Shown here: piece by piece, positions 52,763 through 64,000 of the stretch
Layout of the letters: each line of letters starts with the position of its first letter
How positions within the stretch are numbered: position 1 is the stretch's first letter
Virus record (IMG/VR): IMGVR_UViG_3300034117_002447
Span: 1-64,000 of that record
Direction: 5' to 3' (one strand)
DNA: 64,000 nt
The notes under the pieces: model-generated
Database searches by the model: none
Seen by the model: the letters and a program-made list of their open reading frames with translations, nothing else
What the model was told of the DNA's origin: nothing
Program-made: the position numbers and the translations under genes

Positions 52763-53155
52763 TTAATTTGACTTAAAAATCATACCCACTGCAATTCCGA
52801 CAACTGCCGTTACTATAATCCATAGTATTTTAGTTACAGTAGATTTCCATGACATAAGCTCCTTATGTTCATCCAATATTACTTGATAAATTCTAGCCTC
52901 CTCTTCCTTCCTTTTACGAAATTCAGTGTTCTTATTTACTCTAACGACAATACCGTCTTCAGGATCAAGCAGCTGCTTTTTGATCTGTCTCAGATCTTCG
53001 TGCATGTCCTCTTGGGAAGATTCTAAACCTTCCATTCTCTCTTGAATTATCTTAAGTTCGCCATTTGGCAATTTGGCCTTGATTACGTCGAGCGCATCAA
53101 GTATGTCGTTCATCATAGTATCGACATCTTGGTTATTTCTAGTTCTACCGCTCAT
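52763..53155 (-). CDS. coiled-coil protein with C-terminal transmembrane helix (XhlA/holin-like)
   Basis: Heptad region, then KILWIIVTAVVGIAVGMIF. Confidence 0.6.
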   Translation of the reverse strand: MSGRTRNNQDVDTMMNDILDALDVIKAKLPNGELKIIQERMEGLESSQEDMHEDLRQIKKQLLDPEDGIVVRVNKNTEFRKRKEEEARIYQVILDEHKELMSWKSTVTKILWIIVTAVVGIAVGMIFKSN

Positions 53156-53176: not shown

Positions 53177-53473
53177 TTAGAATCCGCCGTTTTCGTCGGT
53201 GTGTGCTTCAATATCGTTAGCTGATGTTTCAACTTCAATATTAGGTTCATTGTCAGAAGTTCCTTCTTCTGAATCATCTTGCATGTGGTTTGGAACGTTG
53301 TGTTCAGTTTCTCCGCCTTCTACTTCTTCAGCTGGTGCTGGTAATAGTGCTTGATCTTCTCCGCCCTGTGGCATTTCAGCAGTATGGTCCATTTCGTGGC
53401 CCATTTCCTGACCCATTTCGCCTGTTCCTTGTTGAACGAATTCTTCGAAACTTAAAATTTTATTATTATGCAT
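53177..53473 (-). CDS. acidic low-complexity protein, capsid-targeting-like N-terminus
   Basis: KILSFEEFVQQ; late promoter at 53494-53500. Confidence 0.7.
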   Translation of the reverse strand: MHNNKILSFEEFVQQGTGEMGQEMGHEMDHTAEMPQGGEDQALLPAPAEEVEGGETEHNVPNHMQDDSEEGTSDNEPNIEVETSANDIEAHTDENGGF

Positions 53474-53507
53474 TTGTTTGAATAATTTGAGTTTATTTAT
53501 CTGTATA

Positions 53508-53531
53508 ACTGGAACATTTAGAGCCCCGCTC
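53508..53531. repeat. downstream arm of inverted repeat enclosing ORF 53542-54348
   Basis: ACTGGAACATTTAGAGCCCCGCTC is the near-reverse complement of 54426-54447. Confidence 0.85.
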
Positions 53532-53541
53532 AGGACTAATG

Positions 53542-54348
53542 TTACTCAGTTATGGAGGTTCCGCAATTAGGGCAGAATTTCCAACTTGATTTTTTGTGGC
53601 GAGTACCGCAACCTGTGCAATAAGAGCGAATTTCTCCCATTTCAACAGGTTTTTTACTTTCCGGTAGAATCTGCCACCTGACGGTTGTACAGCTCCATGA
53701 ATTGTATTGGCCGTCTGCATATTCGAAGTTTTGACTAGAGCTTTCGCCCTTTTCAATTCGACCCGTTTCCATCGACCCCGGTATTCCGGCTGGACCTTGA
53801 GGGCCGTTTGAACCTTGTGGACCTAGCGAACTTGCGCAGTAAAATGCATTAGCTGAACCTCCAATATTAGAAGTTAGCGTATGACCTGGCCACTGGTGAG
53901 TCGTGTACGTAAATGGCTGTTGCCAAATATTCGTACCTGAATTGCCGTTTAGCTGATAAGACGATTCATCATAGAACTGTACTTCGACCTTGCCGTTATC
54001 GGCGATTGCTCGAACAGTTCCAGTTGACGTATCAACGTCGTAAGTTTCAAACTTGAATTTTTTAGCAACATCCATAAATCTTTCAAGATAGACTCTCTGG
54101 CCTGGTTTCACGATAATTCCTGCATTCGATAACAGTTTCCCATTTATCCAGATTTTTGCAAGAACTGGTGTTGTTTTTGGATTGTGCAGTTCAATTTCAA
54201 AATGTGAACTGTCTTTTAGATAGACTGACTGACCGTAGGTCTTTAGTCTTCCCCTGCCCTTTGTTATGTGGGCAGTAGGTTGGGGTTGGCTGCTGAAAGT
54301 ATTAAATACTGCAGTTGAACCACCAGTTGTGATTGTTTGTTGGTACAT
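53542..54348 (-). CDS. hypothetical protein with beta-rich N-domain, short Gly-X-Y stretch and C-terminal zinc ribbon
   Basis: FEIELHNP...LAKIWING...V.PGQRVYLERF; GPQGSNGPQGPAG; CTGCG...FCPNCG. Confidence 0.85.
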   Translation of the reverse strand: MYQQTITTGGSTAVFNTFSSQPQPTAHITKGRGRLKTYGQSVYLKDSSHFEIELHNPKTTPVLAKIWINGKLLSNAGIIVKPGQRVYLERFMDVAKKFKFETYDVDTSTGTVRAIADNGKVEVQFYDESSYQLNGNSGTNIWQQPFTYTTHQWPGHTLTSNIGGSANAFYCASSLGPQGSNGPQGPAGIPGSMETGRIEKGESSSQNFEYADGQYNSWSCTTVRWQILPESKKPVEMGEIRSYCTGCGTRHKKSSWKFCPNCGTSITE

Positions 54349-54363
54349 AGTAGTTATGTTATT

Positions 54364-54447
54364 TTTTGCTCATCTATTTGTAACCTTTCGCGATTACTCA
54401 AGGGCTCGTAAACCCTAGACGAACAGAGCGAGGCTCTATGTTCCAGT
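54364..54447 (-). other. structured 5' leader with upstream inverted-repeat arm (54426-54447) and two hairpins
   Basis: Minus strand: ACTGGAACATAGAGCCTCGCTC, then AGGGTT-TACG-AGCCCT and GTAATC-GCGAAA-GGTTAC. Confidence 0.65.
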
Positions 54448-54487
54448 AATATTTAACTCAGAAAATTTAGAAAGTTTCTCGAGAAGA

Positions 54488-55384
54488 TTAAGCGATTGCT
54501 TTAAGTGAAATAGGTTCAGCAGTTCTCTTATCGTATACGTAAAGTGAATCTGCGATTTTTGTCTTTACCCAGTCCCCATTTTCTCCAATTGGGAGCTCGA
54601 CTGTATCTCCAGGATTTAGAGTTTTGGCAATCTTTCTGCCATCCGGTAAAATAATTCCCAATTTCAAGAATCGGTCTTCTCTAAAAGAATCACGGTTTAG
54701 GACACCATCAATTGTGCATTCAGTGAACTCTTTTAGGAATGGAATAAACACCTTAATTTTTCTACCAGCTGCGACTGAGTATTGTTGTTCTCCGCTAATA
54801 ACTGCTGGAGTATAGGCAGCTCTTCTTTCTGGGATTACTTGACCGTCTTCTGTAAGTTCAAATACGCTATTTACTGTCTCTTCTGGTAATTCATATACGG
54901 TAACTGATCCAGTTTTACCCTTTCTAGAAAGATGATTTTCCAAATCCATTTGAATATCTTTATGAGACATTCTGTGAGGGAGCACCTTGATTGTTGTAAG
55001 AACATCATCTGAAATATAGGCGAAAACTCGCTCGCCGATGTGAATTTTTTCAATCTCTCCACTAAATGATTTTACAGACATTGTTACTGGATAAGAGGTA
55101 CCCTCTATCTTTAAGAATGGTGCAACTACTGGTAGGGCTTTATGGCCTGATGGAAATTGAGTTCTCTCAATATGGTCTTGGCTCTTTTTAAATTCAGATT
55201 TAATAGCATCAATGAGTTGAGAGTAGACTTCGTTTATTTCAAATCCAGCTTCTCGAATAAATTGTCTCGCTGGCTTAGGTAAGTTAATTGACTCTAGATT
55301 ATAGATTCGTTGATCTATACGACCCTCTCCGTGAGAAGAGATTCGGGCTTCAGTTATGAATTGTGTAAATTTAAGTAACTTCAA
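54488..55384 (-). CDS. hypothetical protein, capsid-targeting-like N-terminus
   Basis: LLKFTQFITE; TATAAATA at 55408-55415. Confidence 0.75.
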   Translation of the reverse strand: MKLLKFTQFITEARISSHGEGRIDQRIYNLESINLPKPARQFIREAGFEINEVYSQLIDAIKSEFKKSQDHIERTQFPSGHKALPVVAPFLKIEGTSYPVTMSVKSFSGEIEKIHIGERVFAYISDDVLTTIKVLPHRMSHKDIQMDLENHLSRKGKTGSVTVYELPEETVNSVFELTEDGQVIPERRAAYTPAVISGEQQYSVAAGRKIKVFIPFLKEFTECTIDGVLNRDSFREDRFLKLGIILPDGRKIAKTLNPGDTVELPIGENGDWVKTKIADSLYVYDKRTAEPISLKAIA

Positions 55385-55423: not shown

Positions 55424-55678
55424 CTACTTCCCTACGTATTCTGAAGGCAGATCTGCAGGTTTAAATACTCTACAGAAACCAAAATGGACCCATCGATTAA
55501 GGAAATCTACTGAGTATTCCTGCTTGTCGGTAGTGACCATTCCATTAATTGGATCGCTTGAGCCCTTAATTATAGTTTCATTAGGTTTGTCCTTTCTAGA
55601 AAAGACTATGATATTACCCTTTTTTAAATTTGCCATGTTGATTAAGTTAAGTACCCCAGGAGGGATTCGAACCCCCAT
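55424..55678 (-). CDS. hypothetical protein; true start likely ATG (MANLKKG) at 55636
   Basis: The ORF-track 5' end overlaps tRNA-Arg(ACG). Confidence 0.55.
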   Translation of the reverse strand: MGVRIPPGVLNLINMANLKKGNIIVFSRKDKPNETIIKGSSDPINGMVTTDKQEYSVDFLNRWVHFGFCRVFKPADLPSEYVGK

Positions 55679-55724
55679 CTCACGGTCCGTAGCCGTGTGT
55701 TCTGATCCATTGAACTACCGGGGC
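55652..55724 (-). tRNA. trnR-ACG: tRNA-Arg(ACG)
   Basis: GCCCCGG/CTGGGGT acceptor; CACGG-CT-ACG-GA-CCGTG anticodon arm; TTCGAAT T-loop; no encoded CCA. Confidence 0.93.
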
Positions 55725-55733
55725 AGGTACTAA

Positions 55734-55964
55734 TTAGTTTCGGTTATGTGCAGCTTTCCAGCGCTCTTGCAGACCTTCCCAGTAGCCACTTTCGTTTTGA
55801 AAACGTTGAACCACTTGAACATCTTCGGGAAAACCTAGTGCAAGCTTAGCCTGATTACGAATATCAGCCTTCATAATTGTCTGAATCAAGGCTGTGTGAA
55901 ACGATCCAGCTGTTCCAATCTTATAGAACATGAATTCTCTTTCTGCGTTTGTTATTTCTTCCAT
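55734..55964 (-). CDS. small conserved phage protein within the tRNA array
   Basis: GSFHTALI.....AD..N..KL..GFPE pattern; TAGTACAATA upstream. Confidence 0.7.
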   Translation of the reverse strand: MEEITNAEREFMFYKIGTAGSFHTALIQTIMKADIRNQAKLALGFPEDVQVVQRFQNESGYWEGLQERWKAAHNRN

Positions 55965-55988
55965 AGCTATATTGTACTAAATAATTTG

Positions 55989-56062
55989 TAATCCAGGCAG
56001 GACTCGAACCTGCGACCTACCGCTTAGAAGGCGGTTGCTCTATTCCACTGAGCTACTGGACT
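55989..56062 (-). tRNA. trnR-TCT: tRNA-Arg(TCT)
   Basis: AGTCCAG/CTGGATT acceptor; ACCGC-CT-TCT-AA-GCGGT. Confidence 0.93.
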
Positions 56063-56063
56063 A

Positions 56064-56151
56064 TGGCGGAGAGTGGAGGTCTCGATCCCCATTCCCTTTC
56101 GGGAACCGCTCGCTTAGCAGGCGGCGACAACACCTTGTTGCTTCACTCTCC
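56064..56151 (-). tRNA. trnS-GCT: tRNA-Ser(GCT), non-canonical (8/4) fold
   Basis: GGAGAGTG/CACTCTCC 8-bp acceptor, 5-bp D stem, CT-GCT-AA loop, long variable arm, 4-bp T stem with ATCGAGA loop, G73, CCA encoded. Confidence 0.85.
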
Positions 56152-56156
56152 ATTAG

Positions 56157-56237
56157 TACTCCCGGTGGGACTCGAACCCACAAGCATTGCGCACTCGATC
56201 TTAAGCCGAGCGTGTTTACCAGTTTCACCACGGGAGC
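56157..56237 (-). tRNA. trnL-TAA: tRNA-Leu(TAA)
   Basis: GCTCCCG/CGGGAGT acceptor; CTCGG-CT-TAA-GA-TCGAG; variable arm; A73. Confidence 0.93.
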
Positions 56238-56244
56238 ATTTTTG

Positions 56245-56320
56245 TACCTCTGGTGGGATTCGAACCCACAAAATCTCTTGATCCTAAGTCAAGCGGCTTT
56301 ACCAGTTTACCCACAGAGGC
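56245..56320 (-). tRNA. trnL-TAG: tRNA-Leu(TAG) with very short variable region
   Basis: GCCTCTG/CAGAGGT acceptor; CTTGA-CT-TAG-GA-TCAAG; variable region only AGATTTT. Confidence 0.88.
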
Positions 56321-56323
56321 AGT

Positions 56324-56401
56324 TGGGGTAAACGATCGGGATCGAACCGACGACCTCCTGAACCACAATCAGGCGCTCTAACCAACTGAGCTACGTCTAC
56401 C
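56324..56401 (-). tRNA. trnH-GTG: tRNA-His(GTG)
   Basis: G-1 and C73; CCTGA-TT-GTG-GT-TCAGG; CCA encoded. Confidence 0.95.
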
Positions 56402-56416
56402 ATGTAAAAGAACGAG

Positions 56417-56500
56417 CGGAAGAGTGAGGTATCGATCCCCATACCCGAAGGTACCACTAGTTTTCAAGACTAGGTCCAGCGCCAGCTGAATTACTCTTCC
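56417..56500 (-). tRNA. trnS-TGA: tRNA-Ser(TGA), likely (8/4) fold
   Basis: GGAAGAGT/ACTCTTCC; CTAGT-CT-TGA-AA-ACTAG; GTACC-TTCG-GGTAT variable arm; GGGG-ATCGATA-CCTC T arm; G73. Confidence 0.9.
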
Positions 56501-56508
56501 AGTTTTTG

Positions 56509-56578
56509 AGGTCAATGTTGGAATCGAACCAACTCCTCAGATTTTGCAGACCTGACGGCCTCCACGACCAAACTGACC
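56509..56578 (-). tRNA. trnC-GCA: tRNA-Cys(GCA)
   Basis: GGTCAGT/ATTGACC acceptor; CAGGT-CT-GCA-AA-ATCTG; U73; compact D arm. Confidence 0.92.
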
Positions 56579-62461: not shown

Positions 62462-62542
62462 TGGTACCCTCTGAGAGACTCGAACTCTCACCCTAAGACT
62501 AGATCCTAAGTCTAGCGCGTCTACCAATTCCGCCAAGAGGGC
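62462..62542 (-). tRNA. trnL-TAG: tRNA-Leu(TAG), second copy
   Basis: GCCCTCT/AGAGGGT acceptor; CTAGA-CT-TAG-GA-TCTAG; CCA encoded. Confidence 0.93.
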
Positions 62543-63686: not shown

Positions 63687-64000
63687 TTAATGTGAGTCTC
63701 CAATATCGTGCTTTTCTCCGTAAATCAAATAGTCTGGATTAATTACCTTTGCTACTCGATTACGCTCACCGCTTATGTGCTTAATAACAATGCCTTCATG
63801 CGGCACCTTAGTTCCTTTGATCATATTACCAAAGACGAACTGGTCTTGTGTCTCTTGTGACCACGGTCCTGTGTATAGGACTCCAACGTGAGGTAACTCT
63901 AGCGCTTCTTTGAAAAGGAATTCAGTGTAAATAGTGGACTCGTATTTGCCGTTTACTGTGGCATCGAATCCAACGAATTCAATATCAGTCAGACCGTACT
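63687..64000 (-). CDS. RNA ligase (Rnl2/DRB0094-like), C-terminal part (truncated by window; not in ORF track)
   Basis: Frame from 63998 reads ...FVGFD...LPHVGVLYTG...HEGIVIK...RVAKVINPDYL...*, containing ligase motifs IIIa, IV and V. Confidence 0.75.
   Translation of the reverse strand, partial: YGLTDIEFVGFDATVNGKYESTIYTEFLFKEALELPHVGVLYTGPWSQETQDQFVFGNMIKGTKVPHEGIVIKHISGERNRVAKVINPDYLIYGEKHDIGDSH

Follow-up and report, generated by a model that had tools for sequence, protein, structure and literature searches.

Complementary untranslated regions and a conserved three-way-junction leader around a zinc-ribbon protein gene of huge phages: a candidate end-paired mRNA

The 64,000-nucleotide stretch of DNA analysed here (the window) comprises the first 64 kb of a phage genome of 271,290 bp and 38% G+C (IMG/VR record IMGVR_UViG_3300034117_002447; G000), the source assembly of which stems from freshwater lake metagenomes. 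On its minus strand, the window carries an open reading frame (ORF) of 268 amino acids (53542-54348) that is bracketed by two complementary segments, both of them intergenic. The upstream segment, the 5' arm of a helix termed P1 (54447-54426, minus strand; ACTGGAACATAGAGCCTCGCTC), can pair with the downstream segment, the 3' arm (53531-53508, minus strand; GAGCGGGGCTCTAAATGTTCCAGT), which gives 22 bp with one U-G pair and a 2-nt bulge, the bulge and the G of the U-G pair both residing in the 3' arm. The energy of this duplex is -39.9 kcal/mol. An AT-rich extension (54451/53504) adds three pairs across one mismatch, resulting in 25 bp between extended arms at 54451-54426 and 53531-53504 (minus strand). 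Each arm occurs only once in the genome, and together they enclose exactly this one ORF. The inverted repeat had already been described in an initial annotation of the window, and its position on the minus strand, its 22 bp, the single G-U pair and the 2-nt bulge are all confirmed here.

Directly 3' of the 5' arm follows a leader of 59 nt (54425-54367, minus strand), which is predicted to fold into a three-way junction. It is connected to the start codon by an A-rich linker (54349-54366, minus strand) containing no Shine-Dalgarno-like sequence; P1 itself ends 77 nt before the ATG. At the other side of the gene, a spacer of 10 nt (53532-53541, minus strand) separates the stop codon from the 3' arm. 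The 3' boundary is marked by the late-type promoter motif of the next gene (53493-53501, minus strand; GATAAATAA; ATG at 53473), which lies outside the element. A 4-codon upstream ORF, MSKK* (54373-54359, minus strand), overlaps the linker and the 3' strand of the outer leader helix P2; it is not conserved beyond close relatives, and in locus L045 its ATG shares the reading frame of the main ORF.

In a genome rich in A and T, a repeat of this kind might simply arise by chance. When the whole genome was scanned for inverted repeats with arms 100-2000 nt apart, using a match/mismatch/gap score, the P1 repeat scored 19. Repeats scoring at least 19 were found 13 times in the real genome and 3.5 +/- 1.5 times per 271 kb in dinucleotide shuffles, and the P1 repeat taken alone is not significant. 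Among the 30 best inverted repeats of the genome, P1 is the only one with both arms intergenic and exactly one enclosed gene, while the others that score high are long and gapped, mostly within genes, or lie in a collagen-like gene. Hence, end-to-end pairing as a genome-wide habit of this phage can be ruled out. What raises the repeat above chance is the position of its arms, both of which fall in the roughly 9% non-coding share of the genome, together with their complementarity, which related phages conserve with different sequences. The ORF itself contains a sequence nearly identical to the 5' arm (15/18 nt) at 54008-54025, which could compete for the 3' arm (53507-53524); it is probably there by chance.

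For the comparison with related phages, homologues of the ORF with 39-100% identity were taken from 80 IMG/VR contigs, mostly phage genome fragments, with contigs of up to 373 kb; further ORF homologues occur in Lak megaphages and in other uncultivated phages of 460-735 kb. In most homologous loci, a sequence about 80-105 nt before the start codon is complementary to a sequence 1-15 nt after the stop codon. The arm sequences themselves turn over: at least ten different 5' arms are found across the clades, each with its own downstream complement (in short form TAGAGCCTCGCTC; TAGAGCCTGAC; CATAGAGCCTCACTCT; GTATTGAAGGGTGCCTTTCGTAC; AAGTGGTGCCA; TATAGCGCC..AATAAC..GTTAG; GAAACACCCATAAC; AAGCACCTTAAC; AAGGGTGCCTTTCG; TTAAGCGGTGCCTTTTACC). 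As an alignment-free control, the upstream flank of each of 55 distinct loci was compared with the reverse complement of each downstream flank. Here, the own flank pair beat all cross-clade pairs in 38 of the 55 loci, with a mean score of 27.1 for own pairs and of 17.0 for cross-clade pairs, the 99th percentile of the latter being 25. Compensatory change is seen between close relatives within clades, for example in ACTGG/CCAGT (L001) versus ATTGG/CCAAT (L007), GTATTGAA/TTCAATAC (L050) versus GTATTAAA/TTTAATAC (L043), and CACCC/GGGTG (L058) versus CACCG/CGGTG (L078). A 12-bp version of P1 is retained even by a phage of 462 kb with a protein of only 34% identity. On the protein tree, P1 occurs in all major branches, true absences being confined to clade K (eight loci), L045 and L053. 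For this phage and clades C, D, F, G, H and J, in which it contains a central bulge or internal loop, the helix measures 20-30 bp, for clades B and E only 11-14 bp; among the duplexes listed, no clade has an uninterrupted Watson-Crick run longer than about 14 bp. The comparison of sequences thus indicates that the pairing of the 5' with the 3' untranslated region (UTR) is under selection and is kept through compensatory change, and the complementary flanks that the initial annotation had proposed to look for in homologues are indeed present. A chance origin, which the roughly 3.5 equal-score repeats per 271 kb of shuffled genome might have suggested, is refuted by this recurrence beside a covarying leader and retains a practically negligible probability.

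The leader which the 5' arm runs into is built from an outer helix P2 (54424-54416 with 54376-54368), a hairpin P3 (54415-54412 with 54405-54402), a junction strand UUGA (54401-54398), a second hairpin P4 (54397-54392 with 54385-54380) and a junction strand AAA (54379-54377), all on the minus strand. P3 and P4 correspond to the two 5' UTR hairpins of the initial annotation (54415-54402 and 54397-54380), which are therefore present as parts of one covarying structure. In an alignment of 28 diverse loci, RNAalifold predicts 18 pairs, 17 of which show compensatory changes on both sides. Of the paired cells of this alignment, 97.2% can pair, compared to 72.8% with shuffled partners and 39-48% when the partners are shifted by 1-3 columns; for covariation, the score is 0.734 compared to 0.267 and was reached in 0 of 500 shuffles. 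Several of the pairs are predominantly G-U or U-G, so that the structure exists on the sense strand only. Four nucleotides of the junction are invariant (a U, a GA dinucleotide and an A), as is one G-C pair in P3. A covariance model made from the alignment finds a single site in the whole phage genome (E = 4e-15) and, when applied to 68 loci, exactly one site per locus in 62 of them, always on the sense strand and just upstream of the ORF; it gave no detection in the Lak loci, two other distant loci and one 5'-truncated locus. Since the leader pairs are rich in G-U and all 62 hits lie on the sense strand, the sense transcript is the molecule under selection. A search of Rfam 15, including its ribozymes (hammerhead among them), riboswitches and phage motifs, returned no relevant match over 53300-54700 at E values up to 10. 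A hammerhead was rejected as well because the junction strands UUGA and AAA do not fit its core. The heptamer TGAGTAA, to which the initial annotation had drawn attention because it occurs in both UTRs, is indeed found in both, but it is common (56 copies in the genome) and its 3' copy merely consists of the last codon and the stop codon. In the Lak homologues (L083-L085), the ORF, read with the standard code, is interrupted by in-frame TAG codons, which is in line with recoded stops, and the 5' region, where the leader model gave no detection, has a local hairpin and a TTTGAG motif.

Across the loci, 0-5 nt separate the 5' arm from the leader, and P1 and P2 are therefore contiguous. The loci in which P1 is absent are instructive in this respect. 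Clade K, L045 and L053 have no 3' arm, and they carry a local hairpin of 5-6 bp (for example CTAGA-GGTT-TCTAG or TAGAGC-GCTT-GCTCT) in the place where the 5' arm would be, with a fully conserved leader next to it; clade K additionally has an ordinary terminator hairpin after the stop codon. As a local hairpin stands in where the 3' arm is missing, the conserved feature is a helix at the 5' edge of the junction, the partner strand of which may be either local or 900 nt away. This fits a required helix at the 5' end of the leader. Furthermore, the 5' arm of clades A-E and I has an inner half that can pair with itself or with the bases that follow (AGAGC-CUC-GCUCU in this phage, elsewhere UAGAG...CUCUA or AAGUG...CACUU), which makes two mutually exclusive folds possible; such a local alternative hairpin is not evident in clades F-H. 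In another clade, a tRNA-Ser(UGA) gene lies upstream of the studied gene (L040, L046, L047, L054, L057 and L059), and in L040 and L057 the distance from the 3' end of this tRNA gene to the start of the 5' arm is 1-3 nt. There, tRNA processing would put the arm at the extreme 5' end of the mRNA.

Predicted folds of the complete transcript agree with this arrangement. Both the minimum free energy (MFE) and the centroid fold of a 958-nt RNA hold P1 as well as the leader, and the A-rich start region, which P1 does not cover, stays open. Compared to shuffled sequences, the full transcript has a z-score of -10.7, whereas a neighbouring-gene transcript of equal length has one of -0.5. Among homologous transcripts with the repeat, all 41 of 41 retain 11-30 bp of P1 in their MFE fold. 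Out of the options considered in the initial annotation, that of a structured RNA carrying an ORF in its loop therefore comes closest, as the 5' arm runs into a covarying, strand-specific three-way-junction leader and the closing helix is kept in the full-length folds of the window and of the homologues. The coding region alone (53540-54350, minus strand) also has a low z-score of -4.3 against 20 dinucleotide shuffles, and the ORF may contain further selected structure.

RNA data are available as contigs of related strains (90-97% identical) from four lake metatranscriptomes, which cover the 5' half of the ORF and downstream genes. Two of these contigs end at 54424 and 54425, i.e. at the inner base of P1, which slightly favours the helix. 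These ends could reflect an RNA 5' end, a stop of reverse transcriptase at the helix or an assembly break at a polymorphism.

Regarding transcription signals, the initial annotation was literally right in stating that the gene lacks the late promoter of its neighbours. A T4-late-like motif, (G/A)ATAAATAA(C/T), is found upstream of about 60 of the 315 ORFs of the genome. In front of the studied gene only a near-match to ATAAATAA is present, the AT-rich box GTTAAATA (54450-54457, minus strand) located 2 nt upstream of the 5' arm, which is a putative promoter. A box of the TAAATA/TATATA type lies 2-8 nt before the arm in most homologous loci. Further examples of the late motif within the window are located at 53501-53493, 46266 and 22476 (all minus strand). 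For 14 of the about 60 ORFs, the start of the motif is only 12 nt away from the ATG, implying late mRNAs with hardly any leader; in this genome, the studied gene with its structured leader of 100 nt stands apart. Another motif that is enriched upstream of genes, TAGTATAAT, precedes 27 ORFs and may mark an early or host-type promoter class.

Taking these features together, P1 would be the basal helix of a gene-specific leader RNA which closes the mRNA into a loop and thereby stabilises or locks the transcript, a reading to which we assign a likelihood slightly above even. In the order of transcription, the RNA would present the 5' arm, the 59-nt junction with P2, P3 and P4, the open A-rich start region, the 268-codon ORF, the 10-nt spacer and finally the 3' arm. 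Once transcribed, the 3' arm would pair with the 5' arm, and the whole message would be closed into a loop. The 5'-proximal RNA would then be buried in P1, which abuts P2 and could stack on it. In this state, P1 likely shields the message from decay starting at the 5' end or from cleavage within the leader, and it would tether the 3' UTR. The three-way junction is probably the binding site for a factor, as its conserved nucleotides suggest; a reasonable guess for this factor is the zinc-ribbon protein encoded next, which would amount to autoregulation. Autoregulatory mRNA leaders bound by their own product are well known from ribosomal-protein leaders and from the T4 gene 32 and gene 43 operators. 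Like these, the leader described here is structured, contains conserved junction nucleotides and is found upstream of one protein family only, the binding itself being putative.

The enclosure of an ORF by paired mRNA ends has precedents. In hok/Sok of plasmid R1 and aapA/IsoA of Helicobacter pylori, the 5' region of the mRNA pairs with its 3' end and encloses the ORF; this pairing covaries across the family, the closed form is compact and stable, and local 5' hairpins that can form early are later replaced by the long-range helix (PMC6733600 and work cited there). This is the closest architecture to the present one, since here too a covarying 5'-3' helix encloses an ORF and local 5' hairpins are possible in several clades. 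Particular to the hok and aapA systems are a small toxic peptide, control by an antisense RNA and a ribosome binding site that is hidden until the 3' end is trimmed. The present gene, unlike these, has 268 codons encoding a beta-sandwich and a zinc ribbon, an open start region and an additional conserved three-way junction. In Bacillus subtilis hbs, 14 bp formed between the two UTRs shield a highly structured leader from endonuclease cleavage and thereby stabilise a highly expressed mRNA (PMC5737220). A stabilising role of this kind would be the most economical function for P1 by analogy. However, hbs is a cellular gene, for which the abstract (PMC5737220) mentions no comparative evidence of the present kind, whereas the helix described here is longer (22-25 bp), lies on the 5' side of the leader instead of covering a cleavage site and is conserved in a large family of phages. 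In Staphylococcus aureus icaR, 5'-3' UTR pairing covers the Shine-Dalgarno region and represses translation (PMC3868564), while P1 stops 77 nt upstream of the start codon, so that repression of the icaR type does not apply. With complementary segments in both UTRs of one gene and a selected pairing between them, the element would belong to the same kind of 5'/3'-UTR interaction as hbs and icaR. Searches of Rfam and of the literature yielded no description of the P1-leader element, and it can be classed with the rare end-paired mRNAs while contributing a new leader motif.

Several observations weigh against the reading of P1 as a closing and stabilising mRNA helix. Its formation in RNA is deduced from sequence comparison and predicted folds, and P1 alone could equally be a repeat acting at the DNA level. 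The initial annotation had taken the single G-U mismatch, which is A-C on the other strand, as an argument for pairing in RNA; this argument does not hold across the family, as among 40 distinct arm pairs the transition mismatches are G-U on the sense strand in 13 cases and A-C in 10 (p = 0.68). The upstream box matches the late promoter only approximately, and if the spacing were as in T4, transcripts would begin a few nucleotides into the arm. As for the RNA data, the contig ends at 54424 and 54425 could also be assembly breaks at strain polymorphisms, and one low-depth RNA contig (54330-54480) crosses both arm and box; some RNA therefore starts further upstream, unless this contig derives from DNA. 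Where a clade has a separate terminator downstream of the 3' arm, the 3' end itself is left unprotected by P1. Moreover, the stabilising role is proposed by analogy with hbs and hok.

One question among the alternatives is whether the arms act in RNA or in DNA, where they could be the repeats of an invertible segment, the termini of a mobile cassette or paired DNA-protein binding sites. The missing strand bias of the P1 mismatches would be in line with any of these, and so would the finding that the ORF and its flanks stand among unrelated neighbour genes in distant clades; moreover, the two ends of a recombination or binding system would co-evolve too. Nevertheless, the inverted junction gave 0 matches in viral and metagenome contig collections, compared to 4 + 1 for the native one, a comparison of low power for rare variants, and in none of 55 loci is the gene oriented opposite to both neighbours (likewise of low power). 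The only resolvase-domain ORF of the genome (118445-118729) is 64 kb away, no tyrosine recombinase is encoded in the genome, and the immediate neighbours have no Pfam recombinase match. Arms and leader are single-copy and synteny in clade A is stable, with empty sites not having been searched for. In most clades, the arms are bulged or internally looped. The arm adjoins an RNA structure specific to one strand, and a local hairpin of RNA type replaces it in three lineages. A comparison of sense and antisense energies as a further RNA/DNA test favoured the sense strand at 38 loci and the antisense strand at 15, many of them close relatives, and was uninformative. Because the arm is contiguous with a strand-specific covarying structure, is substituted by a local hairpin in three lineages and the DNA tests were negative, the RNA-level reading of P1 is well supported, if indirectly, whereas a role of the arms in DNA appears very improbable. 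The small mobile or invertible cassette contemplated in the initial annotation thus finds no backing, while its overall interpretation is borne out in part, in that selection acts on the pairing and the evidence favours RNA. Within RNA, P1 could be a processing stem of the RNase III type, with a longer precursor being cut at both arms and the mRNA being released with its ends paired. RNase III stems enclosing the 16S and 23S rRNAs and the T7 intercistronic sites are the familiar models, in which the flanks pair to a helix of at least 20 bp with internal irregularities. They differ from the present case in enclosing rRNA or consisting of local hairpins. The helix of 20-30 bp with a bulge or internal loop in this phage and clades C, D, F, G, H and J has the needed size. 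Longer precursors are plausible, too, given that no terminator follows the 3' arm in this phage, and both the lack of a canonical late promoter and the RNA contig crossing the arm from upstream would be in accordance with them. P1 as the stem of an intrinsic terminator was itself rejected, as the next 9 nt contain on average 2.8 T (2.6 expected), at least 6 T follow in just 3 of 36 loci and the window has no U-tract at this position. Yet, the 11-14 bp of clades B and E and the hairpins of 5-6 bp in clade K, L045 and L053 are too short for RNase III although the leader is conserved there, and no duplex listed exceeds an uninterrupted Watson-Crick run of about 14 bp. The phage has no RNase III gene, and no read ends were seen inside the arms in the low-depth contigs, which are weak data on this point. 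Excision by RNase III is hence a serious alternative where the helix has 20-30 bp, but it cannot explain the shorter helices and local hairpins and is, on the whole, rather unlikely.

A third possibility is a folding lock in the manner of hok or aapA, in which a metastable 5' hairpin forms at the beginning and a long-range helix then holds the full-length mRNA in a state of different activity, to be reopened by trimming of the 3' end or by a ribosome that ends translation 10 nt upstream of the 3' arm. The two exclusive folds open to the 5' arm in clades A-E and I speak for such a lock, as does the 3' arm being placed 1-15 nt past the stop codon and thus within reach of the terminating ribosome; moreover, type I toxin mRNAs show a matching architecture, with a 5'-3' long-distance interaction and hairpins that are metastable (PMC6733600). 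On the other hand, P1 leaves the A-rich start region open, so that no repression of translation is obvious, and clades F-H have no local alternative hairpin. The product is a soluble-looking protein of 268 amino acids with beta-sandwich and zinc ribbon and not a small hydrophobic membrane toxin. Furthermore, no antisense RNA gene is evident, a dedicated search for an antisense promoter or RNA not having been made. We therefore regard the folding lock as unlikely, more so than RNase III processing. Still less probable is a closed-loop mRNA in analogy to the eukaryotic one, in which ribosomes released beside the start are used again, or a circular mRNA with its paired ends cut and then ligated by the RNA ligase of the phage. 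Re-use of ribosomes on the same message is conceivable because the 3' arm, which holds the 5' leader, is 10 nt away from the stop codon, and an ORF of an RNA ligase family (63741-64334 of the genome, minus strand, crossing the window end at 64000; PF09414, E = 8e-17) is encoded by the phage. Circularisation or self-processing, as put forward in the initial annotation, found no support: no joints were seen in the transcript contigs (short contigs of related strains), Rfam gave no ribozyme match and the phage genome has no RtcB gene. If true, a closed-loop or circular mRNA would represent a new mode of gene expression in prokaryotic viruses.

Under the reading of P1 as the basal helix of a stabilised, end-paired mRNA, the element adds to a short list. 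Few prokaryotic mRNAs are known to pair their ends (the hok-type and aapA-type toxins, hbs and icaR), and most of them were found singly by experiment. Here, the pairing is defined by comparison alone over dozens of uncultivated huge-phage lineages, and it encloses a full-size gene. The leader constitutes a new cis-acting RNA motif with a covariance model ready for database searches, which can also serve as a marker for a widespread huge-phage protein. Moreover, the long helices, short helices and local hairpins form a natural series of variants in which the effect of end-to-end pairing could be tested. Finally, the locus illustrates that inverted repeats on either side of a phage gene are not necessarily sites of recombination.

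The protein encoded within the loop is composed of a beta-sandwich (residues 25-128 and 192-229), a disordered insert (residues 131-189) that includes a short collagen-like stretch, and a C-terminal zinc ribbon of the type CxxC...CxxC. In the protein model, the predicted local distance difference test (pLDDT) is above 90 for residues 21-130 and about 86-95 for residues 191-230. The family comprises more than 1,258 homologous clusters, and all source-named ones are called hypothetical or zinc-ribbon domain proteins. Pfam yields only sub-threshold zinc-ribbon matches, PHROGs nothing significant, and a fold search of the PDB with the protein model no significant match. The resemblance of the zinc ribbon to ribosomal protein bL33 remains below significance (E = 0.05-0.1). 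Relatives by fold are uncharacterised proteins of giant viruses, iridoviruses, nimaviruses and baculoviruses as well as DUF7918-containing proteins. Foldseek matches to the beta-sandwich have E values of 1e-10 to 1e-4 and template modelling (TM) scores of about 0.35-0.48, and include proteins of Pithovirus, Marseillevirus and mimivirids, iridovirus ICP-18, wsv390 of white spot syndrome virus (WSSV) and baculovirus P22.2. Judging from these model-based matches, eukaryotic large DNA viruses and huge phages may share this fold.

Around the locus, the best conserved neighbour is an XhlA/hemolysin-like ORF of 130 amino acids two genes downstream (52763-53155, minus strand), with 73-79% identity in most of clade A and 56% in L045, compared to 25-68% for other neighbours. 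Upstream of the locus, seven tRNA genes are found at 55651-56578 and 62462-62542 (minus strand) of the window. Elsewhere in the genome, at 118150-119294, an inverted repeat that includes two late-promoter motifs encloses the serine-recombinase ORF (118445-118729, plus strand) together with a convergent ORF.

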